Shown: piece by piece, positions 32,957 to 55,140 of the stretch
Layout of the letters: each line of letters starts with the position of its first letter
How positions within the stretch are numbered: the stretch's first letter is position 1
Source: Mytilus californianus
Taxonomy: Eukaryota
Direction of reading: 5' to 3'
Assembly: GCF_021869535.1 (NCBI RefSeq)
Contig: NW_026262723.1
Span: 63,984,001-64,048,000, forward strand
Length of the DNA stretch: 64,000 nucleotides
Notes under the pieces: model-generated
Seen by the model: only the letters and a program-made list of their open reading frames with translations
Told to the model about the DNA's origin: nothing
Databases searched by the model: none
Position numbers and translations under genes: made by a program

Positions 32957-35900
32957 GACAGGTTTTTCCGATTATCTGCCTTAGTTTGTGACGCGACTCC
33001 TAGGCATCGTCGTAGTAAGATCGCCATTACAACCGTGAAAAAATATAAACAAGATATAGATCTATATGCCCTGACCGCATATAATTAAATGTAAACACAA
33101 GAATGTGAAGTCGTACTTGACCTCGGCAAAATTATATGTGCTATAAATAATAAAGTAATTAGATAAGGATTCTAAGTGTATTGCAGGCCAGGTGTCGTGT
33201 CCTTAAAATATAACTGTATTTAATATGTTACACGCGGGACATAATAAATTTTATACGAATACTAATCCCAGGTTACATGTCGATTATAATCATTTGGTAA
33301 TCAAAATATTAATAATTATAACGCATACATAAATAAAAAATAAATAGTCTTGACCGGTCGAATGTGATATATCAGAAAAACCAGGGTGCAATTTTATCAA
33401 ATCATAGAAATTTCTGTGGTCAGACCTATAATGAGACAGTCCTAAAACTTAACAATCCACTAATCAGACGGTCCTACAGAGACGAGAGTTTTGTGCTTTT
33501 TGCTTGACTCACGTATAATGCTCAAAATTGAGTGACATTTTCGTATTACTTTGGTGTTCGCATGAATTGCGCTATATGCTATCGATGCGTCGGACCATAT
33601 GTATATAGATATAACTTTGCGATTAGAATATGGGCTTAAGAAGTTTTGAACTTTCACGGCCCATGTATTCCTATAGTTATAATGTGTTCGATTCCAATTT
33701 CTTTTGCAGAAAATTACTCGACACACAACTACTATAGTATGTATAGTATATAACATCATGATCCAGTCCATGCATAATATAAATGAATGCCATTAAACCA
33801 CATATCCAACTATCTCGGTCATCACGTGACTTTTGTGATTTATCAATGGCCGATAGGGTGTCAGTGTAAATGTATGGGACACTTCGGTTTATCGGTTCTA
33901 ACTTTTTTATAACTTTATGTATTTAACCTTCCAACCCCACATTTTTTAAATCTTTCTTATCGGCAAATAAATATGTAATAAATTTCAGTTCAGAAGTAAC
34001 ATTTCTTGCTTCAAATTAGGTTTGAAAATCGAGGTTTAACAACTGGAAGGTCCCGTTAACGCCTTTGTTAAAACTCGATAAAAATGCTATAGGACCATCT
34101 TATATATTCAAATATCTTATCTTATTTATTGTTAATAATATCCTTCCAACCCCCAAAACTCTAAATAAGACATTAAAGTTGGAAATTCCGAGAACTAAAT
34201 CAGTTCAGGTAACGAACATTTTGCTTCAAAATTCGATTGAAAATTCTCAATTTTTGCAATCTCGTCGAAATTTTTAAAATGGCGGAGTCTACCGGAAGTA
34301 ATCATCATATAGCCACGGTGTGCGAAAGATTTGTCTGTTTATCGTGATTATATGTTTTATAAATATCGACTCTATATTTATAGTTTATATTTTAAACTTT
34401 ATAAGTCCTTGTTTTAATACATAAAATTTTCGAGAGAAAAACAAAAAATTTAGCTTGTCCAGACAGTTCAAAATGAGTATAAAGTGCATGAGAACATAAT
34501 ATGATTTGTAAATCACTGGTTGAATTTGTGTCTCGCATATGAACGTTTGAAACAGCAATAGAGGTTCCTTGTGATCACAAATGATCTGAATTAGACTTAA
34601 TATAAGAACAATATTATCTTTCCCTCTTCATTTTGTTGAAATGTCCTTTTTTTCACAATTCTGGTACTGTACTTGCAATTTTTTTATGACTTTATGGTTT
34701 CATTTTTTTGTATCATTTGTGAACGCCTGCGCTCTTACGAATGAATTATAATGTTTAAAGCATGTATATGGGGAGGGTAAGGCACCTGCAAACACCCCAC
34801 CACAATAAAATGTGCCTGTCCCAAGTCAGGAGCCTGTGATTCATTACTTGGTTGTCGTTTGTTGCTGTACATCATTTTTCTTCCTTCGTTTTCTTGGGAT
34901 CTTATTTTGTACATAGATCCGACCAATAGTCTCCTCATTTGAATTGTTTTATTTTTTGTCACTTCGTGGCCTTTCATACCTGGCTATGCGGTGTAGGTTT
35001 TGCTCATTGTTGAAAGCAGTACGATGACCTGTAGTTTTAAATTTCTGTGTCATTTGGTCTCTAGTATTGGCAATCATACCACATCTCCTTATTTTTATAA
35101 ATAGTCCTCAAGCCAGTTCTGGTTGTTTTTACTTGTGACAAATGTATCAAGTAGTTGCAATTGTGCGAGGAAAAGTGTACACAAAAGAATATTTATCCAT
35201 GATAATGATAGTTTTTTTTTTTCTCACACTAGTTATTCGCCCAGATGTTGTTTGCCTCACTGTTTTTTTTTATTAATTTTCTTTAAAACTCAAACGTTAT
35301 AGATTCTTAAGATTTGAAGAAAAATAGCTTCGGGTTTCACAAGTACTGAATTGTTTTAATTTTGTCAAGTGAAGACCTCGTACAGCTAATAATGTATGCT
35401 ATGTGGTAAAGGTTTTGCTTATTGATGAAGGAAGTTAAGGATGACCTACAGTTGTTGTAAATCACCCTTAATATCCAGTGGATATGTAATGTCTTAACGG
35501 CCATTATATTGCCTCTGCTTTTTATAAACCAATCTGGCAATATAGATCATTTTTACAAATGTTTATTGTTGAAGACCTTTGGATACGTGTCAGTTTTATG
35601 TGGTTAAATTTTAATTTTTTGTTTTTTTTTGTCTTATGATCTCTTATTTCAATATGTATGAAAATGATAACAGTTTCTATTTTAAATATCTCTGAATCTA
35701 ATAAAATACCAACAATAATAAGTTTAATATAAATTTATTTTGCATTTCATAAATAAATATCACATAAGATACATAAATATCACATAAGATACTCAGTTAT
35801 ATCTATATATATATACATTTGATAACTTAACAATGGGTTCATTTTGAACTTTCATAAACATAAATCTCTATTTCAAAATAAATTAAACATATAAAAAGCA

Positions 35901-36314
35901 TATGATAATAATGGTAAACTGTCTTTTAGTAAGCATTAATCTAGACATTTTGTACATAAGGGCCAATAATAATGTTCACATGTGTATATGTCCCATACAT
36001 TTATTGTATGTATAAACTTAACAAGATCCAAGCTTGCTTAAATAAAGATCTTCAATTTAAACAATTCTCGATTTACAATATTTAATTGTGAGAATTACAG
36101 CAATGTTTTCATCCAATGTGCATTTAATAAATTTAACACAGATAATATTTACACAAATATCTAAACAAAAATAGTTTTTTTGTCAAAATATTTATCAAAA
36201 TTGATGTTCTTGAAAATAAATCTTCTAATTGGTAAAGATTTACAAAAACTTTATAAAAATACACATGTTCACATAACTATTGGCACAATCATCAATAATA
36301 CATAAGTCTACTGA

Positions 36315-38843
36315 TCAAGTAAGACTTTTCAAGATATCTACAAGTTTCTTTCTATTTCTAACTCTTGTTTTTTCACCCTTTTTCTTAAAAATCAATTCTT
36401 TTATATCATTATCACTAAGATTTTCAATATCTAACTCATTTACAGTACTAGAACTTTCAACATGACCTGCAGCAAAAATCTCATCATCAATTTGCTTTCG
36501 TCTATCATGTCTACTAGTGAAAATATTATTTTCCCACCATTCTGATTTTTTAACATATTGCCGTTTAGGCCTAGCTACATTTTCTGCATGATTAAACTCT
36601 AACCTCTTTCTGACTTGCAAAGCCTCAGAGGGACCGTCCCATTTGGAACATTTACGTTGATGAATTGTCTTAATTACATCGTTATTTTTCTCAACACCTT
36701 GGTTCGAAAACCTTTTCAAAGAACCATATTTTGAAATAAAACAAGGTACATGGTAGATAAGACAGTGCATATAAGGTGTTACATTACATTTTAAATACCC
36801 TTGTCTCTCGATGGACAAAAAAAGTTCCATCCAACTCTTAATTTTACAAAATATATCAAATCCAGTTACATTTTCACATTCTTTGCTACATACAAATAAA
36901 TAAATGGCATAAAAATCCTGCCATACCTTTACAACCTTTTCTTTTGTATCAGTGTTCAGAACATCTGAATTTAACAATTTGTCTGGCAAATATTTTAACA
37001 ATTTAATTTTTTCACCACCAGATAAGCTGGTCCATTCTAAGTCGTTGCTACCCTTTGGTGTCCAAATATGGAAAACAACACCGCAACTTTGTACCAAATC
37101 TTCAAAATTGTCAATATTCACTGGTTTACAACCACTTTTGATTTCTTTTCTGATTTTATCATCTTTGTTTTTGCAATCATCTATCAAATTTCTTAATAAA
37201 ATGTCAGTTACCCTTAACATCAGATGCAATTCATCAGGTACATAGTGATCAACCCCAATTTCTAATAATGGTTTATGCTTGACACCAAACTGACTTTTAC
37301 TCTGACTACTCAGTGTAACAATTTCATCTATTGAACGCAACATATCTACATTATGGTAAAAATCCCATGCTTTGGAAGTGTCAAATCTGTTGTCTTTGTG
37401 AACTTTGCACCAAGGACAGGCAAAATTACCTGTTGACCCACCTAAACCAAGTAAAATTTGAATAAATTTCATATCCCCACCCACAAAAATGTCTAAATCA
37501 ATATTGTGATCATCAACAGAAATGACTTTTTCCTTAGCTAAAACACTTAGCTGCTCAAAAAGAGGTTTACAAGAAGACCTAAGGTTTTCATAATTCTCAC
37601 TACATTTAACTACAGCTACTGTATTTAAATCATTACAAGATAAGCTACATGTATCATCACTTGATAAAACCTGAACAGAAAAAATTACAAAGTTTGAAAT
37701 TCTGCTCACACGAGCACCATCACCTGAAAATTTAATGTCTAATTTGTTTACATTTGATAAATTCTGAAAGTTCTGCTTTATAACTCTTTTCAACTCTGTA
37801 TCTAAATTAATCATTGCCCCTGGCATGTTACCAGGTAACCTCTCTAAGTGAAAAATTTTGTTTATGTCATTTCTACTTTGAACCACAATATATTTTCGAG
37901 GCATGTTATCGAACAGCATTGAAAATTCATGATACGCGGAATCACTCACACAAAATTTGTCTAATAAAAAAACCAATTGTCTCAAATTGTCTTTCTCGCT
38001 TGCTTGTAGAGTGTCATAGCTGTCTTGTGATGGGGAGTTGCTCAAATTCAAGGAAACTTTTTTACCAGCATCTGATATACAGTCTAATTTAGTAGGATTC
38101 AAGCCAAAAGTGTTTGCAAAACACAATGCCTTTTCAGCATAGCTTTCTAATGTTTTCAACTTCCGGAGTCTTTGCCTTGGTTGTAAATCATCAAACTTTT
38201 TTCCACTATTAGAATATTGCTGTTTTTCGATGTTCTCTATATATGTGGTCAGTGTTGAATTTCTCTTTAAAATATATTCTATTTGGTCAATACATGTGTC
38301 TAAATTTTCAGCAATGTCTGCACTCTGATTTTGTTCACTTAACAATAAGTTAAAAAGATCTTTGCATTTTTTTTCAAGCTCTACTTTTTCATGGTTGAAT
38401 TCAGATATTCTGCAATTTAAAGAAGCTACATTTTCTAATTCACTCTTAAAAATGGTAATGTTGTATAACTTGTTGTCATACTGGTATCTCTTTGACCCGC
38501 TGCGGTATTTTACCTTGTAATCATTGTAAACTTTTGAACAGAGGCGATTTATATGTCTCTCAACTCTACCACTTGGCAAAAACTGGAGAAATGTCAATTG
38601 AGAATTTATTACAGCAATAAAAGACAATCCTGTATCTTCAGAGGTGTTAAGCAATCTCAATAAAAATTTACTACTAAGTTGTAACGTTAATGCTACTGAT
38701 GTTGAATCTACAGATTGTTTATTAACATGATATGGAGTCTGTTGAGATGTGAAGCTAACGGAATTTTGAAACTTTTGTAGCGAAAGAGGAGACAAAAAGT
38801 CAGACATTGTTAAAAAAGTCAAAAGCACCAAAGAGTGAAACAT
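36315..38843 (-). CDS. RAG1/Transib-like DDE transposase, 842 aa, uninterrupted ORF
   Basis: Motif order matches the RAG1 core: KFSGD375GARVS, VGGD457MKF, FAC476PWC479, VPDELHLMLR, TPYMH693CLIYH698V, SNQGVE718KNN (mouse RAG1 D600, D708, C727/C730, H937/H942, E962). An NBD-like FDDLQPRQRLRKLKTL segment lies upstream and a short helical tail at the C-terminus. Confidence 0.88.
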   Translation of the reverse strand: MFHSLVLLTFLTMSDFLSPLSLQKFQNSVSFTSQQTPYHVNKQSVDSTSVALTLQLSSKFLLRLLNTSEDTGLSFIAVINSQLTFLQFLPSGRVERHINRLCSKVYNDYKVKYRSGSKRYQYDNKLYNITIFKSELENVASLNCRISEFNHEKVELEKKCKDLFNLLLSEQNQSADIAENLDTCIDQIEYILKRNSTLTTYIENIEKQQYSNSGKKFDDLQPRQRLRKLKTLESYAEKALCFANTFGLNPTKLDCISDAGKKVSLNLSNSPSQDSYDTLQASEKDNLRQLVFLLDKFCVSDSAYHEFSMLFDNMPRKYIVVQSRNDINKIFHLERLPGNMPGAMINLDTELKRVIKQNFQNLSNVNKLDIKFSGDGARVSRISNFVIFSVQVLSSDDTCSLSCNDLNTVAVVKCSENYENLRSSCKPLFEQLSVLAKEKVISVDDHNIDLDIFVGGDMKFIQILLGLGGSTGNFACPWCKVHKDNRFDTSKAWDFYHNVDMLRSIDEIVTLSSQSKSQFGVKHKPLLEIGVDHYVPDELHLMLRVTDILLRNLIDDCKNKDDKIRKEIKSGCKPVNIDNFEDLVQSCGVVFHIWTPKGSNDLEWTSLSGGEKIKLLKYLPDKLLNSDVLNTDTKEKVVKVWQDFYAIYLFVCSKECENVTGFDIFCKIKSWMELFLSIERQGYLKCNVTPYMHCLIYHVPCFISKYGSLKRFSNQGVEKNNDVIKTIHQRKCSKWDGPSEALQVRKRLEFNHAENVARPKRQYVKKSEWWENNIFTSRHDRRKQIDDEIFAAGHVESSSTVNELDIENLSDNDIKELIFKKKGEKTRVRNRKKLVDILKSLT

Positions 38844-38880
38844 AACATGTGGTTTCTGGATAAAATATAATGTTAATTAT

Positions 38881-41800
38881 TCATAATGTGAAAGCGGTTT
38901 TTGAAGACGTGATGACTATCTTCTCTACAGGAATCTTTTTTGCTGATACAATTGTATTGTTGACATCTGGCAGGAACACCTTTTTGAATGTAACAGTTGG
39001 TTGCACTTTGAGTGGAAACTCTAATATTATACCCTGTCCATGAACATTGAGCTTTTTCTCCCAGTGGCAAGATAAAGGTAATTTGTCAAAGTCTGCTTTT
39101 ACAACGCTCTTGGTCTTTAAACAGCCAAACAGGTATTGGTATACATCTGTTGGAAAAGATAAAACTGTCCTACAGTTACGTGAGGTAAGTCTGGTGCTGA
39201 TAGCGTCCTCAAAAAGTTGACTATAAATCTTTAAACACTCATCACTTATGGTTGGATTGATGAATTTGTTGAAATCAGTTTCTGGAATATGCTGTCTTGG
39301 TTCCCAAGTTGTGTCATGAAGTGCAAATCCTTTCCATTTTACAAGGTACAGTTCACCCTGAAAAAAAATTAAAAAATTAATACTTAGTCAAAATAAAATG
39401 TTATCACAGAGATATGTCTCGCCTTTTTGTAATTTTGATAATACAAATGTTGACTCTGCCACCAACAGCATTAATATCTATGTCGTACTTTCTGACGGGA
39501 CAACAAACCAGAAGAAACACTGCCTTATGATAAGGGCATAACAAACAGTTTTGAAGAGATGCCAAGTAATGCTTAATATTTGACTGTCTACTCAAAAATT
39601 GTTGTCGGATTCAAATGTCACAATTATATTCAACAGAAGATACTGTATATGTTACCAAGAAACAAGTTTTATTGAGTTTAATAGCAATAAAAATTTAAAT
39701 TGCTACACATGGTATAGCTAGCACAATAAGACCAAGCTTTGAGCTAAAAATCAAATGTGTCCCATGATGTAGCTGTCAAGAAAGTCAACGAAAATATTTA
39801 AGATGAAGAGGACTGATAGCGATTCCAATATGTGGCTTCTAAGTAATGCATGCAATGTAATAAAAATTTCTTAGTCCGAGAAAAAAAATTAACTTGTCAA
39901 TTGAGTAGTACATCTATAACAATGGGTATGAATCTCACAACTCAAAATATGATTTATAAAGTACCTATTAATTATTGTTTTTCCTAAATATTTTCAAATA
40001 CATGGATTAACTTCAGAAGCTTCTGTGGTAAGCCTGTTTTCTTTAAAAACATTTATTGGGTGGTATTTATTTCTTACAATGTATTTTATTTACAATGTTG
40101 TAAAATTGAAATACATAAAGTTGATTTTGGAATAGACATGTATAATTATTCCAGAAAATTATAAAAAAAATTATTAAAATTTAATGTTGTATTAATCAAA
40201 GAGAAATAAAGCTAAAAAGTTAAATTCAGTCCAACATTCAATTTTTTCCATTTTTTTTGGAGAACAGAAGAAAATATAATACTTTTATTAAATTTAAATA
40301 AATACAAATAAATCATTTTATTTGAAGTCAATTAAGAGAATTAAGGGATTTACTTTCTTTAATTTAACAGACGAGGTAACACTGTGTAATAGTTTAAGTA
40401 TGCATGTGTATATTGTCAAGTGACAGATGCAACACACCTGAGGACATATCAACAGGGGGTAAACCTTAATATAACAGGATGTTACTTGTCAGGTGTGGTA
40501 AACAGGATGGTAATTGAGTGTTTATAAAATCTGACCAGGCACCTGAGGTCTGATAGTAGTTTCTGGATGGGGAATTAAAACAAAAATTCATTCTGCTTTT
40601 TCTGTTAATTTTTAAGATTTAAGCTGAATTTTGTATGCATATAAATAATACTCAGCTTTTTCTGATTCTGTACATTTTACCAAATTAATTTATGTATTGC
40701 TTTAATGATATTAACCACAACTATTTAAAGCTTTTTTATATCTATTGCATAGTAGTGGCATATTGGCCAGCGGTAAATAGCTCAGTGGAAAATTTCAAAC
40801 ATTTACATGTCACATTTTAATTAATTGTATATGGATACAAACTCATAAATATCATAAAATTGGGCTTCTTTAGCAGTGGTGGATCATAACTTTACTAAAG
40901 GAGGGGGGGGGGTTCCCTCTCAGTTAAGGGGGTCGCTCCAGTCATGCTTCAGTGATTCCATATGTTATCAGAATGTAGGACAGAAAGTCACAGGACAAAA
41001 AGTCACAGACAAAAAGTCACAGGACAAAAAGTCACAGTTCAGTTTTGAAATTATTTTTCTTTGAATAAGAAAAAACTTATTTTAAAAAAACATTTTTGTA
41101 TTTTTCTCTAACTATTATATATAAAGCAACTTTGTAATTAAAATCTTTTTAATAAATATCAAAAATTATCAAATAATTGTTAAGAAAACAAAGTGTCAAA
41201 GTGGCTTGGTACTTATATGGCTTCATGGTGCCATGAAATATATCCTTTGCATGATTAAAATTTAATAAATTTTCATTTATCAAGGCTAATGAACAATTTC
41301 ACAAACTGTAAAATGAATATATGGAATAAAAAGAAAAAAATCAAGATCTTTCTCTTATATATTCAAACAATTGTCAACAAATTATTTGTGACTTTTTGTC
41401 CTGTGACTTTTTGTCCTATCAAATTTGTGACTTTGTGTCCGGTGACTTTTTGTCCTGTGACTTTCTGTCCGTTTACGATGTTATCACAACCACACTGAAA
41501 AGGGGGGTGAGGGCTTGGCTTGGATGTGCCTATGTTAAGAATAAATAGATGGAAACCTATGAAATAAGCATTGATGTCTCACCTCTATACATGTATATAT
41601 AATTTTAAGATGTAAAGATGTGATATGATTGCCAGTGAGACAACTATTCAAGAATTATAACAGAAAGTCAAAGGACAAAATGTCACTATTCAGTTTTGAT
41701 ATTTTATACCTTTATAATTTTGCTTGGTTAAGACTTAATAATGTTTTGACTCTAGTATGAAGTTATGAAACACTACCTTTAAAGATGCACTTAAAAATGG

Positions 41801-44800
41801 TATATAAAATAATTAACAATCTTCATTAAAGTGTCTGGTTTAGAAAAGCAAATGGTACAGTTATCATATGCATAGACTATGAATCTAAATTAAGAAGCTG
41901 AAGTAAATAGTGTATAGTGGGTCAATATTCTATAAGAACAGAGGGTTTGTCATGTGTTGGAATGGGGGATGACATTTATGTGTCAGTTATAAGAGACAGT
42001 AACAGTTAAGACATTTTAAGCCTTTTAAAATTGGGTGGGCACTAAACACATGAAGATCGAGTTTTAAAATGTCACACAGAATAAATATGAAGTATATATA
42101 TATATGTTTGTGGTTTACCATCTTTGCCGCAAGTTTATTGTTTTCTGTTTGGTATTAAATTAATATAATGATCCATTTTGTTACATCTTGTGATCAATTT
42201 ATTTGGCAATCGTCAATGGCTGTCAGCAGGGTTTAAGAACATCAGTTGTTCGACCTGTTAGTCAAATGTGTTTTGTTAAAATATGCTTTTTCACTTTTTT
42301 TGGTCTTTTGGAAAATATTTAGACCCCTCTATCATGAAATCTGTTTTAGGCACATATAAAAATTGCAATCATAGCTATAGGTTTGAACATTGTTTTCAAT
42401 TTAGACTTGTTTTATAATATATATATATATAAAAGATGTGGTATGATTGCCAATGAGACAACTCTTCATAAGAGACCAAATGACACAGAAATTAACAACT
42501 ATCGGTCACTGTACAGCCTTTAACAATGAGCAAAGCCCATACCACATAGTCATCTGTGAAAGGACAAAAAAATGACAAATGTAAAACAACTTATAAGGGA
42601 AACGGCCTAACATTAATGTAGAACAAAATGAACGAAAAACAAATATGTAACACAGCAACAAACGACAAGTAATAAATTACAGGCTTCTAACTTGGGAAAG
42701 GTACATACAGAATGTGGCAGGGTATAACATGTAATTAAGCTGGTTCCTAACCCTCTCCATAACCTTGGACAGTATTGTAACCTTAAAAAGGGGGGGGGCT
42801 ATTTCAATACTTAATTGATAGTGGGTGCCGCTCAGGTTCTGTTACCAAAAAGTACCTAACCCTTTTCATATAATATAGAAAAATGTATACCTTTTTATTG
42901 AGTAGGTAAAAATGTAAACTTTTCCCACATTCTTTGGGTTTCATGTGTAGTGTAATGTACATTGTAAGAGTCAAATACCAAAAGGTAAAAAGAGAAAAAT
43001 TGGTTGATAAAAACAGCTGGGAATTCCAAGAAAGATGACAGACGAAGAAGTTATGGGAACTTTATTGACCTAATCATATATTTCTTTTAGTTGTCCGAAC
43101 CAATTCACATATTTTTTAGCTTAAAAAGGTGATGTGTATTCCACCTTGTTTATAAGAAGTGCCCTCTCCTGGTTCATGTGGTTATAACAGTACAACATAA
43201 GTACACACTTTAAACTAGACAAAGTGATCCCCCACCCCATCTCTACTCTGAAAGTAACTGTATTATAATAAAGTCAATGTGAGACTTTCTTTGAGATATC
43301 ATTGTGTCTGAGAGACACAAATGATGCCCTACAGATACAAAGTTTTTTACTTAAAAATACACAATAGTTGAGCATGGGAGCACATAGGATTATGTTCTCT
43401 GTAGGATTACATCTTATACAATAAATACTCCAAAATATCTGTACAAACAGCCAGCAAAGTAAAAACTTCCTAGCATTCAAACTGTTACGGAGGAGTTATC
43501 ATGAAATGCTATGTACCTTTTATGCAAGTATATACTCCACAAAATAAAAAGTATGTATGTTTCCCCTCCCCCCATCCGGATTAAAAATAAGTCCCCTAGT
43601 CAAAAACTTATATTCCACAAAAAAATTGAAATAATTCTTATTCCTGAAAATAATTTGTTTCCATTTTTGAAAAGTGCTTGAAAGCAAAAGGATTGATAAT
43701 CTAAATAAATACACTCAAATTGAGCATAAACAACTGATAAGTCAAACCATTCATGTGACCAGTGTATGACATCTAGTTAAAAAAAAATGACCTGCCTTCC
43801 TGGTCTGTTTACAAAGGGTAGAGGCTGGGGAGGGGAAAAAGACATTCTTTTAAATGTGGCCCAAAGTTCAACAATCTCCCAAAGAAAAAGTATTGATAAA
43901 AAAAAAGACAGATGTATGGAGAGGAGTAAAACAATATGTCCCCCAACTTACAGTTGTGGGGGCATATATTAATCAGTTAATAAGGCTTAACTCACCAGAA
44001 TGAGATGGATACAAATAGAAAAACATATAACAAAAACATAGAGTGGATGTGGCCTTGAACTTGTACTTTTCAACATTTAACAGACAATAAGTACAGATCT
44101 GAGAGTACTTGCAGTTACTGACTGCGAGTTCAAAGCCAATAACAATTTAAAAAAATCATGCATCAAGACTTAATTATCTATCGGTACACATACATGTTAT
44201 GATGAATCTTATACATGTTATATATTTACCAATGGTATATAAAACACTGTATCTGAACTGATTTAAATGTTTATGTCTAACTGATTTGCTAATATATATG
44301 TAAGTTAAATGAACACGTGTATTTATACACATCTAATATGCTGAAAGAATAATTTACAGAATAAAATTGATGGGAAGTCAGATTTTTTTATACGACCGCA
44401 AAAAATTTTTGCGGTCGTATATTGGTATGATCGCAAAGAATTTTTGAGGTCGAATATTGGTATGACGTTGGCGTCGTCATGCATAGACACATTGGATTTC
44501 GCACAATAACTTTAGTTTAAGTGAATGGATCTCTATGAAATTTTACCATAAGGTTCAATACCACAAATGAAAGGTTGGGATTGATTTTGGGGGTTATGGT
44601 ACCAACAGTTAAGGAATTAGGGGCCAAAAATAAGCATTTATGTAACTTCCAGACAATAACTAGTGTGTTAGTGTATGGATCTCTCTGACATTGTACCACA
44701 AGGTTCAATATCACAAAGGGAAAGCTGGGTTTGAGTTTGGGGGTAATTGCCCTAAACGTTTAGAAATATGGGGCCAAAAAGGGGTGAAAAAAAACAAGCA

Positions 44801-47800
44801 TTTTTCTAGTTTCCAGACAATAACTTGTGTTCAAGTGTATGGATCTCTCTGAAATTGTACTGCAAGGTACCTTACCACAAAGGGAACGCTGGGATTGAGT
44901 TTGAGGGTGATGAGTCATAAGGGGGTTCAAAAAAATTGGGGGGGGGGATTTTTTTTTCCATTTTAAGACTTACGATGTATTTAAATTGGTAATTATGATT
45001 GAAAACTCCATTGGAAATTTGAATTGAGATTATGAAATATCTTGGGGAAAAAATTTTTTTTTGGAAAAGATATTTCTTCAAATATTTATTCTTTTTTTTA
45101 TTGAGGGGGGGGGGTCAATACACAAACAACATAGTGTATTTCAAGAAAGCCAAAAAAAGGGGGTTAATTTTTTTTTTTGGGGGGGGGGGGTTGAATTTCG
45201 CAACAGCATAGTCATGATAGTGTATTGCACAAAAGCAAAAACTGAATATAAATTCAAATCATATAACCAATTCTAAGTTCTTTGACTACAGTTATTTGGT
45301 GTCAGAAACCTATTATGTGTCAAATATTTAATTACAATCCAAATTCAGACCGGTATCAAGTGCAAATATTGTGTCCATTTTTGCCCCAACTGTTCAGGGT
45401 TGGACCTCTGCGGTCGTATCCAGCTGCGCTCAACGAAGCATTTTATTTTTTTTATAGTTGACTTTTTTTATTTAAGAAGTTACTTTTAAATTGCAACTAA
45501 TAAACAATGTTACCATGTAGAGTTTTTCTTGTAATATTGCTGTCTCCATGACATTTTCCCCAACTATATTTAATTCAAGAAGAAAACATTTTTAAACTAG
45601 GATTGAAGGCCAGGGGTTCACAAGAAGGAAACATAAGCAGTTATTTCTTGTCTTAATAGATCACCATATATCTTGGATTGTAATATAGCAGTAAAAGAAC
45701 ACTATTTCTTTTCCTGATTCTGCAAATTTTGAGACAGAACTGCAATTCCTGAAAAGGACTCTTATTTTAACTTACAAAAAAGTAATAAGTATAATTTTAA
45801 CATGCGTTTTGTTTAAACAGACTATTAGACTTTGTTCAATTAAATTTTTGATGTAACATTAATTAAATTTTCAATAGCAATTTATACTCAAAATTTGACA
45901 ATTCTGACCAACTTTTATTTGAAAAATTATCAGCCTGATGAGAGACTTATTCTTTTTAAAAAAGCATTATGAAAACTAAGTATTAAAAAATGTTAAAAGA
46001 GAAATTATTTAGTTATGATCTACCAACATACTGAAAGTTTTCCATCTGTTGAATTGGTGTTTTATATTTTAACCTTTGTACTTTATAATTGTATACTTAA
46101 AGAAACTATTAAATTGTAGCCACAATCACATCCCCACTGTGGAGTTAACTTATGGTTTATGTTTTACAAGCCCACTTCTAATGTTTTAAAATTAATTTGG
46201 ATCCATGAATTGTTATATATAGCAGTACATGAGCACTCTTTTTATATATACATGTATCTGCAAATTTTGAGACAGCAAAAGGGGGGCCCTTTTTCTTCTT
46301 CAATATTATGGAACTGCCCCAAAGTTATTTTATGTATTGGAACATAAATTATTTGTATCATTGTTCAATAATGAGTCTTGCCACTTTATGTTAAATAAAT
46401 GTATATTCTGAATGGACACTACATGCATGTACTTCATAGACAACCACTTTATACCATGTATACCCTTTAAAGTTTAAGCATGTTAAATAAAAAAATATTA
46501 AATCTTTACTTACATAAAAGTTTTCTTTTCTTTTATGGTAACTCTTCTTATGAATAAATGTTTATTTTCACTAATCACTCAAAACTCAAGTTATAAAATC
46601 CTTGAAAAATATTCACAAACTCATCACCCAAGTCTAGTTTATAACAATTATAATATTCTTCTGTAAAATTTAGCAGTTCACTTGAATGCTTTGAGAAGAT
46701 AACTGAATTTTTTAAATTAAAACCCTTATTTAATATAGTTGAAAGGATGGCATTGTCTAGACGAATATCCTCCAAAAGTGAAAAGCTTTGTCTCACATGT
46801 GTGCAACTGCCATAAAGGGGGGACCCATATTTTTTAGACAGTCATAAAATATCAACTTGGTAGAATATTTGCATATTGGCATGGCATTTCTAATAAACGA
46901 AGCCATAAAGTTATGACAGTTATTCACTTTGTATATAACCAATTCATATAAATGTTACAAAGTAAAATTTTGGAAATGAGTCAAAAGTGATTTATCATAA
47001 TATATCTTGTAAAAAAGAAATATATCAATTGAAAAAAAAAAATTAAAAAAAAAATTGGAATGATCAATTCCCAAATTTTCTTTATGTCATCTTTACATTT
47101 AAATTTAAAACAATTTATAAAGTAAATTTTTTATACATCACACCATGCAAATTAAAAAATTATTATTTTACATCAAGAATATCATATGGTACCGTATAGA
47201 CACTGTAAATTACCTTTGGAAAAAAAGATTATGTCCTCTCTGTATAAAGGAGGTAGAAGATGAATATCATTTTGCTTTAAAATGTCAAATTTTAGAAGAA
47301 TGTAGGCAAAAACTTTTTCAGGAAGTAGAGAGTATAGTTCCAGATTTCATCAAAATGTCTGATGAGGAAAAATTTGCATTTATGTTTACATTTATGAGTA
47401 TGACGTAACTAAAATTATTGTCAAGGGAATTAATGATTTATATGTTTTAATAAATAGCCTAGCTGATAAGAAAAACTAGTCGATGTAACAAAGTTATGAC
47501 TATTTTATATTTTTCTTATAGTATTTGTTATGATATATTTTATAACAATTGCATTATGAATTTTTGTACTTTTACTTTCAAATTTGCAAAAGTATCACCT
47601 CCTCCAAAACATCTAAATATAGTCTTATAGAATATGAATGTTGTTTTAAATTCAAATATTGTATGTTTGTAATGATTGTTATGTTTGTCTTGGTAACAAT
47701 CCAAGATTTGGATTTTATACCAATAAAATGATTTGATTTGATTTGATTTATGGCTTTTTCAATATCACACCTGTATCAACTTAAGGTGGTATGGGTGTCT

Positions 47801-50800
47801 TTCACCATCTTGGATTGTAAAAAGCAAGAGAACCTAAGGTCCAGATTTTCAATCAAGTTAGCAAAATTTGATGAAGCAATGCAGAAAACTAATCTGAATT
47901 TGCATTTAAAAGAACAAATTTATAAGATAATAACTTATAAAAATTAATATTTATTCCAGTGTATATTATTTTTGCTTGATTTTTAATGTTTTTAAATTGG
48001 CATTTTAAGGGGAGGTAATTGTGTAACTGCATTTTCTGAAGGAATCTACATGGAATTTTGCTATTCTATATTTTAGCCAGAAAAACATACGGTGACCCTG
48101 TCTTTTCTTTTGATATTCTCAAAGCATTTTCTTAAAGCTGTAATCTCGAATTTTATTTTACAATGCTATCATTTAGTTTAGATTCTTATCATATGATGAT
48201 GTTTTTTCCTGTATAATCCATACAAAATGTGTCATTTTGTCACAACCTGTAGCTTGAGAAAATGCATGGTGACCTATCATTTTTATTATATTTTTGAATA
48301 TATTTCAATAAAAACTACGTTTTTGGCAAAGTATGAACAAATTCTATCATTTTTATACACCCTTTTACAGGAGTATTTAATATGGTATACAGTTGACTGT
48401 CCATCGTCAACATGTCAGACATTAATTCAAAAACGCTTGTTCCAATATGCATGAAACTTTGGTGAATTAGTTTATATCTATTGACGTGAGCTCCCTTTCG
48501 TTTTTTATAAATTTCGGATTTACCGTTTCCTAATAATAATATAATAAAAAAGATTCTTTTATCGTTTAACATGTGTGATGATGAGGGACTTGTTTTTTAA
48601 TAAATGATTTTAAGATGATTTTATTGAAAAACATATTCTGTAAATTCAGTATTTAAAGTTTTCTTATAAATTCTTTTTTTTTTTTTTTAATTAATCAATT
48701 TTATTGCACCTTTGCTGTTAACAATTTACTCAATCTACAGCTTCAATTAAGTATCCCTTTAAATTAGTTATTGAATATCTAGGGAAAGATATTCAATAAA
48801 GTATATCTATAAAGTAAGTTATATTAATACAGATCAATACATTAGAACAATTCTACATAATTTTTGTTTTTTTACCGGAATACGGTACGTTTCTTAACCT
48901 ATACTGTATATGATTTTTTTATCAAAGCTTCACTGAACCGCGAAATTGATGATGTATTGATCTTTGATACTGATAGCATGACTCTTCAGTCGACAATAGA
49001 ATTTTGAACTTAAAACTTTTTGTTTTGTTTACAACACTGAATTATATAAGAAGTCTTGGATGATGAGGTAAAAATGTTTTTTTTTTCACACATTATTTTT
49101 TAACAGTAAATGTTGATTTCTATGATAAAGCCGAAGATCGAAAGTTGATCGAAAGTACACGTGGTCTTCAAATTATACATGTATGCAGTAACGTTGCATT
49201 GTGTTGTGTATTCTGCTCGCTCTCCTGCTGATTATAATTTTGCATTGTGAACAGGAATAAACATATTTAATAACAATTCTAATTCAGTGTAGCTGCAAGG
49301 ATTTGTATAGTGAGCTCACTATACAAATCCTTGGTAGCTGTAATAAATTATAAAAGAGTAAAATTGCAAATTTCAGTTAATGCACACCAATTGACTGGAC
49401 ACATGTGCAGTCATGTATTAATGAGGTCACAGCTAAGACTTGTATCTAATAATTGTCATTTCATTTAAAGGAATTCGAAATATTCCCTTGTTTTAAGTAT
49501 TATTTTCTTGTTTTTTTTGCTTCTGATTTTATTTATGTTTATAATGTCCCAGATTTCATTTTTGAAGATTTTGAAGATATCAATGACCTTATCTTTCTTG
49601 TCAGACATATAATATGCTTTATAGATGGAAAAGAAAATTATAGTTAATAGATAGTTCATATCAAAATAAGCTTCATCATCAATTTTATAGCCAGTTACTA
49701 AACTTTCAAGACTAAGTATATGCTTATCAATTTTTAAAAATGCTAATAGCTGGTCAACTTTATGCCAATAATGAACATTATATGAACAGGAAAAAAAGAA
49801 GTGTTTATAATCATCATGTTGCTTACAATAGAAGCACAAACCACTTGGTACTATTTTCCATTTATAAAGTAATTCATTACAGGCTAATATATAATGTATT
49901 ATTTTCCATTTAAACATTTTAAATTTGTTGTTTTCAAGGTAGTTAAAAATAAAGTTAAATGTGGACTTCAATTTTGTAGTCATTTTTTTATGAAGAATTC
50001 TTTCCCACATTAAAACTCCTGTCGGTTAATCATGTGTAAATTGACTTTGCAAGAAAGTATATACTTCTTTGTTACTCATATCTGGTGAAATTTCATGTTT
50101 TAGTAGTATATTTAACTTCACTGATGTTTTTATGTTGACAACAGTTTTGTAAGAGCTTTCTTGTTTTAAAATATTTTGCCAGTGCTTTGGTATAGCTTTT
50201 TTAACTAATGAAAATTTTCTAATCCAATCTTGTTTATTCTTTAAATTTTTTAGTACAGTTTCTGATGATATGTATCCGTTTTCATCTAATATATTATTGA
50301 TGTACAAAATATTACTATTAATCCAGTTTTGAAAGAACAAACATTTCCCATTTTCTTTGATAAGATGATTTCCCCATATAAGTTGTTTTCTAACCTGAAG
50401 AAAGTTTCTTGGTATGATTGTTTGGCCTCCTTTTATTTCTACCCATGTTTTAATTAATTGTTTATAGAATTCAGGTAAAGATTTATAATCTATTTTATTA
50501 AGCAAATTAACATTTGTTAAATTCATTCTGAATAAAAGAAAATCTTTCCCAAATTTATCAAGGTAAAATCTTGGAATAATTTTCCAGTTATCATTTTCCT
50601 TTTTGATTAGTTTTAAAACCCATCTGATTTGTAATGATTTAAGATAGCAGTCTAAATCAATCATTTGTAATCCTCCCTCAAGATATGGTTTACATAATAT
50701 AGTACGTTTAACTTTATCTTTTTTTCCACTCCATATAAAATTATATATTAAATTCTTGAACTTTTGCTTTATTTCCTGTGTTATTATCATACTTGATGCA

Positions 50801-53577
50801 ATGTATGTTAGGTTTGGTAAAATTAAAGACTTAACTACAGTTATCTTTCCTATTAATGTTTAGTTTCGTTTGTTCCATCCTTGAATTATTTTTTCACATT
50901 TGTCTATTTGCTTTTCTGTATTTAATTTATGACATTCTTGATAATTGTATCCAAAATATATTCCTAGACTTTTAATGTGGTCTTGTTTCCAGTTTATATT
51001 TTCAAATTTATCTTTTGAATGTTTAAGTTTCCCAAGCCACAAACCTTCTGTTTTATTTCTATTCAATTTAAGTCCAGAAAGGCTTCCAAAAGTTTCAATA
51101 ATGTTAAGGGCTATACTTATTTCTTTGCGTGTTTTTAAAATCAATTGAGTATCGTCTGCCAACTGACATATTTTTAGCGAGCAAGATTTTCCATCTAATT
51201 TGATTTCAAATCCTTTTAGTTTGTTATTTTCCCTTAATTTAATTGCCATTATTTCAACAGATAAAACGAAAATTAACGAGGATAACGGACACCCTTGTCT
51301 AATCCCACGGAATGTATTAAAGGGGGCAGACACCCATCCATTATTTAAAATACACCCTTTTATATCTGTATACATAGTTTCAACCCATTTAATGAATTCC
51401 TTTTTAAAACCAAATTTTTTTAAAGATTCAAACATAAAACACCACTCCAGTGAGTCGAAAGCTTTAGTAAAGTCTAAAAATAAAATTGCACCATCTACTT
51501 TAAATTTTTCAGAATAATCAATGATGTCTTGGATTTGTCTAATATTAAATCCTATGTATCTGTTTTTTATGTAACCTTTTTGATCAGAGTGAATTATTTT
51601 TGGAAGTACTGATTTTAATCTTTGCGCTAAGGCATAGGCTAATAATTTAACATCATAATTTAATAATGTGATAGGTCTATAGTTATCAAGGGAGAGTGGA
51701 TCATTTTTTTTTATACAAAAGAGATATAGCTCCAATTTTTTGGGAGTTGGTTAATTCACCTTTTTTAAAGCAATAATTGAAAACGGGTACTATCAAATCT
51801 TTAATTTGTTCCCAGAATTTTCTATAAAACTCAACATTTAGTCCGTCCAAACCTGGGGCTTTGTTCAGTTTCATTTTAAATATAGCCTCTGTGCATTCAC
51901 TTATAGTAATTTTTCCTTCACATATATTGCTTTCATTTTCATTAATTTTTTTACATTCTTTAATAGTTTCAAAGTACTTTCTTACCTCTTCTGTGTCAGA
52001 TTTTGTTGAAGTATATAATTTAGTATAATAATTAACTTCTAGATTTATTATTTTGTTTTGGTCATATGTTACCTGTTTATTTTCATCATACAGTTGAGTT
52101 ATAGTTTTCTTATAAATTCTGATTGATATAATTATAATTTATTACAAGCCTGAAGGGAACCTGTAAAAGTAAACCTAAGCTGGGTTTATCCTTAATCAAC
52201 TGAAAAATTATGAAGTTAATTAATCAATAATGGATTATAATCTTGATGATCAGATATGTTTTCATAATCATATAAAATAAATAATTGGCCATAAAGTTCA
52301 AAGAAAATTAGAAAAGGGACACAGGCTAATTTTCACTCAACAACGAAGCCATCAATGTTCATGTTTGCACAATAATTTTCACCTTATATATGTGTTCAAT
52401 CAAGTAAATTGTTATGACCCTTTATTTTTTGTAAAAAAAATATTCTTTTAATATCTGAGATGGTCTTCTGCAAGAATTGAAGGAACAAATTGACAGACAT
52501 ATTTATTCTACTTTTGATATCAAATTCCAAACATAAACTCAGCCTTCACGCTTAACTTTTGAGTCCACAAGCCAGATGCTCAATATTTTGAAAATTTTAG
52601 TTGGATTCTGTTGGCTTGTAGAGGAGAATTTTACAAGCCCGAAAGCAATGTTACAAGCCATGGCCGTAGGACTTGTGGTTAAGCGTGAAGACTGTAAACT
52701 AAAGCATTAAAATCTTATTTAAAGTTGGATATACATATATATATAACAATACAATATACATGTATTAAAGCTCTAAACATATATAAATATTCAAAATGTT
52801 CAATAATGTCATATATATTATTTTTATGTAGAATTACTTCATTATTTCTCATCTATATAAGAATAACTGATGTATAGGATTCTGACTGCCTACTAAATCA
52901 GATTAGACTCTAATATTTTTGACAATCAATGCTTTTGAATGGGTTCACATGGTTTGAACCCTCCCTTTTGCAAATTGCTGGATCTGCCCCTTTAGGCTAT
53001 ACTTCTGATCATGTCTACTATAAAATTAAATGACTATTTAAGAATATTGTATAATTGTTGAAAGCAGTATAGTATAGACTATAGTGTCCTGTAAGTATTC
53101 ACATTTTCTTCTTATCAATTATATACCTGTTGGTTAACTTAAACTTAAATGTATGTATAAGGTTTTATTGGTTTTTATTTTTTTATTTTGGGAAAAAAAG
53201 AGGGGGGGGGGTAGTGAATATTACCGACATGTATTAAATGCCACAGACATATATATATATATATGTCTCTGCAAATGCACTATACTTCTAAACATTACAA
53301 GAACCGTAGGATGGAAATGTATTATAAATAAGCGGGTTTAAGTATGTCTGCATTGAATTATTGACGAGAACTCTCGGAAAACTATAAATTAAAGTAATCA
53401 TAAAATCATACAAATCCTTACCTCTTTAGGAAAATACTTTGCAGTGATGATTCTCTCAATCTCATACTCTTCAGGCAGTACTTCGTGTCTCTGCACCATC
53501 TTCTTACTGTCTTTTGGAAGGCTTTCGCCGGAATCCAATAACTTATAGTTGATCTGACGATTAGGTCTTAAGAACAT
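38881..53577 (-). CDS. Two-exon chromodomain protein, 210 aa (exons 53577-53422 and 39357-38881; 14,064-bp intron)
   Basis: GAG|gtaagg donor and ttttttttcag|GGT acceptor join in phase 0 to give ...EEYEIERIITAKYFPKE|GELYLVKWKGFALHDTTWEPRQHI..., a canonical chromodomain, followed by ~130 aa without stops to TGA at 38881. Confidence 0.87.
40971..41477. mobile_element. 507-bp foldback MITE with 9-bp TSD (Mutator-type)
   Basis: Inverted arms built of ggacaaaaagtcaca repeats; ATGTTATCA duplicated at 40962-40970 and 41478-41486. Confidence 0.85.
42430..42780 (+). repeat. Long copy of the dominant dispersed repeat family
   Basis: Begins aaagatgtggtatgattgccaatgagacaactct, matching the 18680 consensus. 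Confidence 0.85.
44383..45447 (+). mobile_element. Non-autonomous Helentron/HINE-like element with an internal ~160-bp tandem array
   Basis: 5' hairpin tatacgaccgc...gcggtcgtata; three internal units (acaataact...gtgaatggatctct.tgaaatt.tacc..aaggtt) at ~44500, 44650 and 44815; 3' gcggtcgtatccagctgcgctcaacgaagca; T-rich flanks. Confidence 0.7.
47185..47748 (+). mobile_element. 3' fragment of a CR1/L2-group LINE
   Basis: KRLCPLCIKEVEDEYHFALKC...CRQKLF C-terminal Cys/His motif, then a 3' UTR, AATAAA at 47722 and an (ATTTG)4 tail. Confidence 0.75.
48675..52102 (-). mobile_element. 5'-truncated L1/Tx1-type retrotransposon, inactive ORF2
   Basis: RT motifs (NYRPITLLNYDVK, GIRQGCPLS, QLADD) and a C-terminal zf-RVT region. 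ORF pieces 51735-50860, 50790-50026 and 50010-49465 are in one frame, separated by two in-frame TAA; there is one homopolymer frameshift near 51710. Poly(A) tail and AATAAA near 48675-48705; 18-bp TSD agttttcttataaattct at 48657-74 and 52103-20. Confidence 0.93.
52540..52694. mobile_element. 155-bp MITE with CAG...CTG termini and 6-bp TSD
   Basis: cagccttcacgcttaac / gttaagcgtgaagactg inverted termini; taaact at 52534-39 and 52695-700. Confidence 0.8.
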
Positions 53578-54564
53578 GTTGTATCGTTAATTAGTCGTGT
53601 AATAGTGAATGGTTATTCAGATTACGCGCGTCTATAGTGACGGAAGTATAACACTACCGCCACCTAGGAAGTTTAATTACCTCCCTTGCTCAATTACCTG
53701 GTCCCAAAAAAGTTATCGGGAACCAGCTAAAAAGTAATTACAGAGTTATCTACCGTAATTATGACCGTTATAGTTGCATATGACCAAAGAATCCAACATG
53801 TAAATTCAAAGCGATGATTAGTTATGTTTTAAAGCGTCATTTAGTGAACTGCACCCAGGAATAAAATATTTTACAAGCCTTACTTTTCGAAATATTAAAG
53901 CGCCGTCCCAAATAACCAAATATCAAACTAAGTGTTAACCTCATCAGTACGATCGAGCCACAGCTGATCTGCAATATCTTAGTCGAAAATTAAATTGTGT
54001 AGTAATTCCACTAAAGTAAAGAAAACTTAGTTACATAAGTATACAATAAGGCGTCACTGTCATTCATAATATTTTTTAAACGGCTGACGAGGTCCCCCTC
54101 CTTTTATTTAATTTTCAACTCCTTACTCCTCTGTTAACAATATTTTTGTCTGAGTTAATATAGTCGGAATGTCTGTCCATTTTGCAGCATAAAGATACTA
54201 TAGAAGTCGTCATGAATGAAAAAAGTTCGTCTCTTCACACTGGGTTGATTTGCTTGCAATTATAAATACATGTAGCCTCGGGGTCTGTTTCATTGTTATT
54301 AGCTTCATTTATGGTTAATCCAGACATTTTTCCGTTTCCACTACAAAAGTTTGGGGGCACGCGGGGTCCCCTCTTTTTTTCAAATTCCTGGATCTGCATC
54401 TGATGTCGAGGTGGATCTTCTATACAAAAGAGGCAGATGCACTGTAGTCATCGGATTAAATTTTATAGATTAATTTAAGTTTTTAACAGTCGTTTTACAT
54501 CGTGTAAACATTCGTCAGCCAGTGTTATTTTACTTTCATAACAAGTTTTATTAAAAAAAAAACG

Positions 54565-54859
54565 GATTGTGTGCAGTGGCGCATCATCCAAAAAAAATGT
54601 CCGGACCATACAAAAACCTGTTTATGCAAAGTTTTTTTTATGTTGATACGGCTTTGGTCCACTCAGGTTTGTTGGCTCGTCTGAAGGCATCACAGTCATA
54701 AGTCGTATATGAAATCAAACCAGGGCAGTCATCGTGCAACTCGTTGTGTAATTCGCATATTGATTTTTTCCACACCTGAAGTTTTTTACGATTATTTGTA
54801 CAACTATTAACTGCACAAGAAATGCTTCCGTGTTTTTTATAACTTTCGGCAGCATCCAT
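54565..54859 (-). pseudogene. Decayed THAP-domain ORF just inside the right end of the 22-kb element
   Basis: MDAAESYKKHGSISCAVNSCTNNRKKLQVWKKSICELH...WTKAV, then frameshifted V.SGHF..DDAP.AHNP, resembling the THAP C2CH end (VCSxHF...PT..NP). Contains stops and frameshifts. Confidence 0.6.
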
Positions 54860-55140
54860 TGTAAAATAAATCAGAAAATGAAAGAAATACAAATGTAAAC
54901 AGAAAATCGATAATGTTTTGATCAATACACGTGCGTTATTTTTCACGGTTGTAATGGCGGATCGGTCACGTGAGAGGTTAATGGATACGCCCATGTTTTC
55001 TAGGTCAATTACAGATAAACCCGTCTATAGTACGCAAACAATATTTGTCTCATATTACGTTTTTTCATAGATATGCCTTTAAGCTAGATACTTTTAATAA
55101 GGTGAATATAAACAAATATATACACAGGCAACTGGTGTCA

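Follow-up and report, generated by a model that had tools for sequence, protein, structure and literature searches.

A two-gene transposon of the mussel Mytilus californianus encoding a RAG1-fold transposase and a chromodomain protein

Does a RAG1-like transposase in a mussel genome travel with its own reader of histone methylation? The question arises from a stretch of 64,000 nucleotides of Mytilus californianus DNA (assembly GCF_021869535.1, contig NW_026262723.1, positions 63,984,001 to 64,048,000 of the forward strand; hereafter the window), in which an earlier note, made from the letters alone, described an intact transposase gene following closely upon a chromodomain gene on the same strand. 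The best overall explanation, to which we assign a probability of roughly 0.7, is that the locus represents an autonomous cut-and-paste transposon carrying two genes on one strand, one for a RAG1-fold transposase (open reading frame 2, ORF2) and the other for a chromodomain accessory protein (ORF1). The range noted earlier, 36315–53577, corresponds to the coding part only, and the element itself occupies 33801–53782 of the window.

ORF2 (36315..38843, minus strand) is uninterrupted and encodes 842 amino acids, comprising a coiled-coil N-terminus, a RAG1-fold core of the DDE (Asp-Asp-Glu) type and a SAP-like C-terminal tail; the Pfam SAP model matches two of its homologues in this region. The start codon common to the homologues is M13, at 38807, and not the ATG at 38843. 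The earlier note had assigned a full set of RAG1-type catalytic and zinc-binding residues to this protein, and the assignment holds in an alignment of 32 homologues (21–43% identity), in which D375, D457, C476, C479, H693 and H698 show no variation and E718 is conserved in at least 90%. For six of these seven residues, namely D457, C476/C479, H693/H698 and E718, hidden Markov model alignments show the pairing with counterparts in RAG1L and RAG1, which in RAG1 numbering are D708, C727/C730, H937/H942 and E962. Searched as a single sequence, the 842-residue protein gives no Pfam match, including DUF1280 (PF06918), at E values up to 1. Its sole match among PDB sequences is amphioxus RAG1L at an E value of 0.5, and this alignment already pairs D457, the CxxC and HxxxxH motifs, and E718. 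A profile built from the 32 homologues reaches RAG1L at 3.5e-10, zebrafish RAG1 at 2.3e-9 and mouse RAG1 at 2e-7, and HzTransib is absent from the best 60 profile matches listed (E up to 0.47). When 1.84 billion representative proteins were scanned in full, 3,170 clusters matched at E up to 0.001; the named homologues are unannotated proteins of Mytilus, Mercenaria, an octocoral and a sponge.

The predicted structure points in the same direction. The AlphaFold (AF2) model of the transposase has a mean predicted local distance difference test score (pLDDT) of 84.5, and Foldseek ranks RAG1 first (E 4e-14), followed by RAG1L and HzTransib. In VIA-align, model residues 281–761 superimpose on residues 457–1007 of mouse RAG1 with a Z score of 26.9 (450 residues aligned, root-mean-square deviation 3.5), and the corresponding scores are 24.7 for BbRAG1L and 22.6 for HzTransib (413 residues aligned). 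The best match after these three is the P element transposase at Z 12.6, and ISCth4 and Hermes score 9–10. The RNase H-fold DDE core, the ZnC2 (CxxC) and ZnH2 (HxxxxH) modules, and a whole-core similarity well above that to other transposases (Z 22.6–26.9 versus at most 12.6) place the protein in the RAG1/Transib superfamily in the broad sense. These findings support a transposase that is RAG1-like both in its sequence profile and in its modelled fold. The N-terminal residues 1–280 are modelled as an alpha/beta part and a 70-residue helix; they contain six cysteines and four histidines, none of which falls in a conserved column of the alignment of 32 homologues.

The second component is the chromodomain gene, which the earlier note had presented as a 210-residue gene with its stop codon 38 nt before ORF2. 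The gene is real and lies on the same strand, but no single 210-residue ORF was found upstream of the transposase: the coding sequence is split into two exons by an intron of approximately 14 kb, and the gap between the ORF1 stop and the ATG at 38843 is 37 nt (73 nt to the conserved start M13). Exon 1 (53422..53577, minus strand, 52 residues) was located by tblastn with the exon-1 peptides of other copies (E 8e-9). It provides the start codon as well as the first strand of the chromodomain (EEYEIERII), and its peptide, MFLRPN...EVLPEEYEIERIITAKYFPKE, ends in KE before the phase-0 donor GAG/gtaagg. The intron (39358..53421, minus strand) has been enlarged by nested repeats, whereas it measures 500–1,100 nt in compact copies. 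Exon 2 (38881..39357, minus strand; 158 residues and a stop) is preceded by the acceptor ttttttcag, directly past which the protein continues as GELYLVKWKGF...TWEP; its coding part, 39357..38884, completes the chromodomain, adds a conserved C-terminal domain of about 120 residues, and is followed by a TGA stop at 38881–38883. Joined in phase 0, the two exons encode 210 residues. A micro-exon just upstream of exon 2 had been considered and was dropped, since exon 1 at 53577–53422 splices directly in phase 0.

Exon 2 alone matches the Pfam Chromo model (PF00385) with 32.7 bits against a cut-off of 25.1 (E 6.9e-8, model positions 17–45 of 53). The three aromatic cage residues that had been read from the sequence are confirmed as Y38, W60 and F63; the second and third positions (W, then F or Y) are kept in eight lineages, and the first (Y) is found in exon 1 of six other copies. 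A profile of the ORF1 chromodomain retrieves SUV39H1 at 1.6e-8, followed by CDY/CDYL, CBX8 and HP1, within a range of 1e-8 to 1e-6. The chromodomains of SUV39H1, CDY, CBX and HP1 proteins are readers of histone H3 trimethylated at lysine 9 or lysine 27 (H3K9me3 or H3K27me3). Conservation extends through the C-terminal domain of about 120 residues, with 17 invariant columns in eight ORF1 sequences from lineages that are 26–40% identical. This domain is confidently modelled (pLDDT 88.6), and the fold searches with Foldseek and VIA-align returned weak rows only, the best being an R3H domain at Z 4.0. In the ESM Atlas, a cluster of 98 cnidarian Chromo proteins of 194 residues matches the ORF1 model with a template modelling (TM) score of 0.61. 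A word-based homologue search with exon 2 returned nothing, which is a limit of that tool; tblastn and the Atlas do give homologues.

That both genes belong to one element, as the earlier note proposed, is borne out by the inverted repeats and by comparison with the empty site. Uninterrupted copies of the host repeat (L053, L054, L057, L061 and L063) continue from the sequence on the 53783 side into that at 33801 and below, which defines an insertion of 19,982 bp between 33800 and 53783. This insertion (33801..53782, minus strand) split the host repeat and comprises the two-gene transposon together with later nested repeats. It is bounded by 22-bp inverted repeats, 19/22 complementary and reading CAT...ATG. 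The 5' repeat (53761..53782, minus strand) begins CATATGCAACTAT on the element strand, and the 3' repeat (33801..33822, minus strand) reads CATATCCAACTAT... on the plus strand and is followed by CACGTGAC. Where the empty site has one A, the filled site has two, at 33800 and at 53783, so that the target duplication is 1 bp long. A second lineage behaves in the same way: its six copies (85–100% identity) share a sharp 5' end, CATACGGCAAAAT, and four of them also retain the 3' end, ...ATTTTGCCACATG, giving an element of 4.9 kb with CAT...ATG ends in which the flanking base before equals the base after in four of four complete copies (c/c, t/t, a/a, t/t). Ends of the form AT...AT with a 2-bp duplication would fit the window and fail in this second lineage; the ends are therefore read as CAT...ATG with a 1-bp duplication. 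The end sequences, CATATGC/CATATCC and CATACGG/CATGTGG, have CA as in the CAC heptamer and T as the third base. Two lineages with otherwise different ends have in common the octamer CACGTGAC, located immediately internal to the ends (33823–33830; L036:7624–7631), and it may be a binding site for the transposase. Automatic inverted-repeat searches of single contigs (L031, L032, L065, L067 and L034/L004) gave nothing convincing. The ORFs of at least 100 residues in 34000–56000 are the transposase, pieces of a nested retrotransposon of the LINE (long interspersed nuclear element) type, one frame antisense to the LINE and one frame in the host repeat; none of them combines kelch repeats with a PHD finger, in agreement with the earlier statement that the element has no RAG2-like gene.

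The pairing of the two genes recurs well beyond this copy. At no fewer than 13 other loci of this genome, a homologue of ORF1 exon 2 is situated directly upstream of a transposase, and these transposases are 27–54% identical to that of the window. A transposase match follows directly downstream on the same strand in 17 of the 31 genomic ORF1 matches, and most of the other 14 are broken fragments; the adjacency count covers 54 of 187 transposase candidates. The phase-0 intron, placed before G/E-x-x-Y/F-LVKW, and an exon 1 with LPExY-[IV]-ER-[IL] are found again in L032, L033, L034, L036/37/40, L039 and L067. Tandems of a Chromo ORF and a transposase are likewise present in contigs L031, L032, L066 and L067, with sources that include a Joint Genome Institute metagenome contig (L031, 11-nt gap), a contig of a clam-symbiont metagenome-assembled genome with its Logan twin, probably host DNA (L065/L066, 5-nt gap), and two further Logan contigs. 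Since the tandem order, the intron position and the C-terminal domain are conserved across lineages, these sequence comparisons indicate that ORF1 is a functional, co-inherited transposon gene and no chance neighbour.

This conservation bears directly on the explanation that a host chromodomain gene fragment came to lie beside this one transposase copy by chance or by a single capture. Chromodomains are common, and the exons are 14 kb apart here; nevertheless, the same ORF1 with its non-chromo domain and phase-0 intron precedes strongly diverged transposases, also in contigs from other invertebrates, which contradicts chance adjacency and makes this explanation scarcely credible. It is also improbable, although to a lesser degree, that ORF1 and ORF2 constitute one gene, in which splicing or read-through yields a chromodomain-transposase fusion. 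The inter-ORF gap is short, ranging from 5 to 147 nt across copies, and the segment 38844–38880 contains a pyrimidine tract and a cag 12 nt before the ATG at 38843, in frame with the exon-1 donor. Splicing to this acceptor would add 52 shared N-terminal residues to the transposase, and no reads support it; it would also skip exon 2, with the loss of most of the chromodomain. The ORF1 stop is conserved, the ORF1 and ORF2 frames differ (offset 1 in the window), and no database homologue of 463–1473 residues carries Chromo. The RNA data, about 6% of one stranded RNA sequencing run, cover ORF2, exon 2 and the region 3' of ORF2 at a depth of approximately one read, and show no reads in the unique intron bins 39600–40500. 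All reads have the same orientation, which by the usual library convention would make them sense reads. No splice junction appears in these sparse data, and the gene model accordingly rests on sequence and homology.

Between these two in likelihood, and quite unlikely, stands a pair of domesticated host genes maintained by selection, in place of a transposon relic. Both frames have stayed intact in spite of the 14 kb of nested insertions, genomic copies that are nearest to this one (84–91% DNA identity) are full of stops, the RNA reads are faint and of one orientation, and the locus is also present in sequencing runs labelled as other organisms. In contrast, DNA contigs from another individual (run X18, about 2% divergent) contain 1-nt insertions or deletions inside ORF2 at 36745, 36817, 37679 and 38717, so that broken alleles of the locus occur in the population; no protein more than 60% identical over a long stretch was found in a set of 5.8 billion proteins, save one 390-residue fragment; and the inverted repeats are intact, with the insertion lying inside a repeat. 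Because of the X18 mutations and the lack of a close orthologue in protein databases, we regard the window copy as an old insertion and not a domesticated gene. It is probably an immobile relic whose frames have stayed intact by luck in this haplotype. In the young 4.9-kb lineage, whose copies are 96–99% alike, the transposase frames are split or shortened in both copies read (L007:962-3357 and L008:1429-3459), so its recent spread is no proof of autonomy for these copies. A much more substantial rival, though one we place clearly below an even chance, is that the element belongs to a family already catalogued, for example under Chapaev or Transib in Repbase or Dfam, with only the chromodomain ORF having gone unremarked. 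The Transib superfamily comprises Transib, TransibSU, Chapaev and Chapaev3, in which Transibs encode one protein and Chapaevs have an N-terminal 'Chapa' zinc finger (PMC4411706), and another study treats DUF1280 as the Chapaev transposase and places it in one group with RAG1 (PMC3985635). The language-model and structural neighbours of the transposase in the ESM Atlas are unnamed clusters, clusters in which 16–51% of the members carry DUF1280, and RAG1, and more distantly Transposase_21. Chapaev, rather than RAG1 itself, may be the named transposon group closest to the element, the kinship of Chapaev and RAG1 being already published. Chapaev and Chapaev3 are likewise distant RAG1-related transposases of invertebrates, but none of the 32 homologues matches PF06918 at E up to 0.01, and the DUF1280 model found no match in this genome in a search whose controls likewise found nothing. 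The 280 N-terminal residues, devoid of conserved cysteines or histidines, provide no Chapa zinc finger. The CAT ends and 1-bp duplication also differ from the CAC ends and 3-bp TWA duplications of Chapaev3 (PMC3014272) and from the 5-bp duplications of Transib (PMC4411706, PMC9435367) and RAGL (PMC9435367). The earlier note knew of no DNA transposon family with this pairing, and full-text searches of the accessible literature, Repbase and Dfam lying outside their scope, likewise turned up no account of Transib, Chapaev, EnSpm or 'DNA transposons' paired with a chromodomain gene; a literature search on 1-bp duplications returned no case involving a transposon. The element has the fold and active site of the broad group and falls outside the narrower Transib, RAGL and Chapaev definitions, and we take it to represent a distinct, so far undescribed clade within the RAG1/Transib/Chapaev group.

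The closest comparison is with RAG1/RAG2 and the RAGL transposons (ProtoRAG). They share with the mussel element the fold of the core, pre-RNase H region through C-terminal domain (Z 24.7–26.9), the DDE residues and the CxxC/HxxxxH zinc sites, and in both systems the second gene encodes a histone methyl-lysine reader domain. However, the RAG2 partner consists of a kelch propeller and a PHD finger, whereas that of the mussel element is a 210-residue chromodomain protein; the RAGL genes are convergent and those of the mussel element are in tandem; and the 5-bp duplication and CAC heptamer of RAGL stand against 1 bp and CAT ends. The mussel transposase also lacks a RING or N-terminal zinc domain, and it has the coiled-coil N-terminus and the SAP-like tail. 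Transib (HzTransib, PDB 6PQX) has the same core fold (Z 22.6), cut-and-paste transposition and short inverted repeats, yet it encodes one protein where the mussel element has two genes. Chromodomains occur in other mobile elements, in the integrases of chromoviral (Ty3/gypsy), Maverick and Ginger-type elements, where they presumably choose the chromatin for integration; there the chromodomain is fused to a retroviral-type integrase, in contrast to the separate protein beside a RAG1-fold transposase seen here. A transposase accompanied by a smaller accessory protein is also known from PIF/Harbinger (Myb-like protein) and En/Spm (TnpA, TnpD), whose accessory proteins bind DNA, whereas that of the mussel element carries a histone-reader domain.

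If the locus is an autonomous two-gene transposon, its transposase core (residues ~281–762), with its RAG1/Transib architecture, would recognise the CAT...ATG inverted repeats and, judging from the fold, would cut in the RAG/Transib manner, and the flanks show integration with a 1-bp stagger. The ORF1 chromodomain, which is of the HP1/SUV39/CDY type and has an intact cage, would read methylated H3 tails of the K9me3 or K27me3 type and might thereby steer or license the transposase on chromatin. We infer this binding and the steering of integration from the features of the chromodomain and from the analogy with chromoviral integrases. A promoter at the 5' end would probably be common to both ORFs, and ORF2 could be translated through re-initiation or alternative splicing. 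The window copy would have entered an older repeat and subsequently gained about 14 kb of nested repeats. A complex prediction with ORF2 and ORF1 exon 2, run without controls, returned 'no answer' with a score of 0.00 and has no bearing on binding either way. The functional parallel with RAG1/RAG2 that the earlier note put forward is hypothetical, the likeness being formal so far.

Several observations weigh against the two-gene transposon explanation. At a depth of about one read, the RNA data contain no splice-junction reads and are too few to show junctions or a bicistronic message. The C-terminal domain of ORF1 has no recognisable fold, which makes its role a guess. Duplications of 1 bp are uncommon among DDE transposons, and the evidence for one here comes from five insertions. 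In a contig of the octocoral Paramuricea clavata (L064:5424-8658), an ORF1-like gene follows downstream of the transposase in the opposite orientation, and this convergent layout is that of RAG1L and RAG2L in the RAGL transposons. A more far-reaching form of the explanation, which we advance only tentatively and hold to be less likely than not to survive in full, would make the element part of an uncatalogued RAG1-fold clade of bivalves, cnidarians and sponges, characterised by a 1-bp stagger and by an obligate, separate methyl-lysine reader recruited independently of RAG2.

The remaining features of the insertion lie outside the two-gene system. The intron contains a fragment of a non-LTR (long terminal repeat) retrotransposon, the LINE mentioned above (49465..51735, minus strand), recognised by its ORFs and by an RVT_1 match at E 1e-34. 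It also contains a miniature inverted-repeat transposable element of about 500 bp (40971..41476, strand not given), recognised by its inverted repeats and present in at least 40 genomic copies at 90–93% identity; its inverted ends of about 30 bp are made of GTCAC-containing repeats. An intron piece of about 60 nt (39392–39453) shows a DNA-contig depth of about 1e5 and high RNA depth, and appears to be a hyper-abundant, expressed short repeat. A 240-bp inverted repeat, 34843–35086 and 42434–42677, was rejected as a pair of long terminal repeats; the two segments are inverted copies of an abundant short repeat of about 290 bp that has thousands of genomic copies at 77–79% identity. The host repeat at the insertion site (33012–33801 and 53783–55029) exists in hundreds of copies at 93–97% identity, many of which carry an insertion or deletion of about 420 bp near the site, and it holds an ORF of 118 residues (54638–54994) with no Pfam match.

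If the more far-reaching form is true, cleavage of the RAG1 type became coupled to chromatin marks on two or more separate occasions in evolution. Central to the origin of V(D)J recombination is the question of how RAG1 became dependent on its H3K4me3-reading partner RAG2, and a widespread relative with the same catalytic fold and a different histone reader would offer an independent system for comparison. Such a comparison could tell whether this transposase fold repeatedly acquires partners that read chromatin, and it could reveal the role of the partner, be it targeting, licensing or restraint, as well as how the width of the stagger varies within the fold. The annotation of mollusc and cnidarian genomes would gain a defined two-gene family with its ends.

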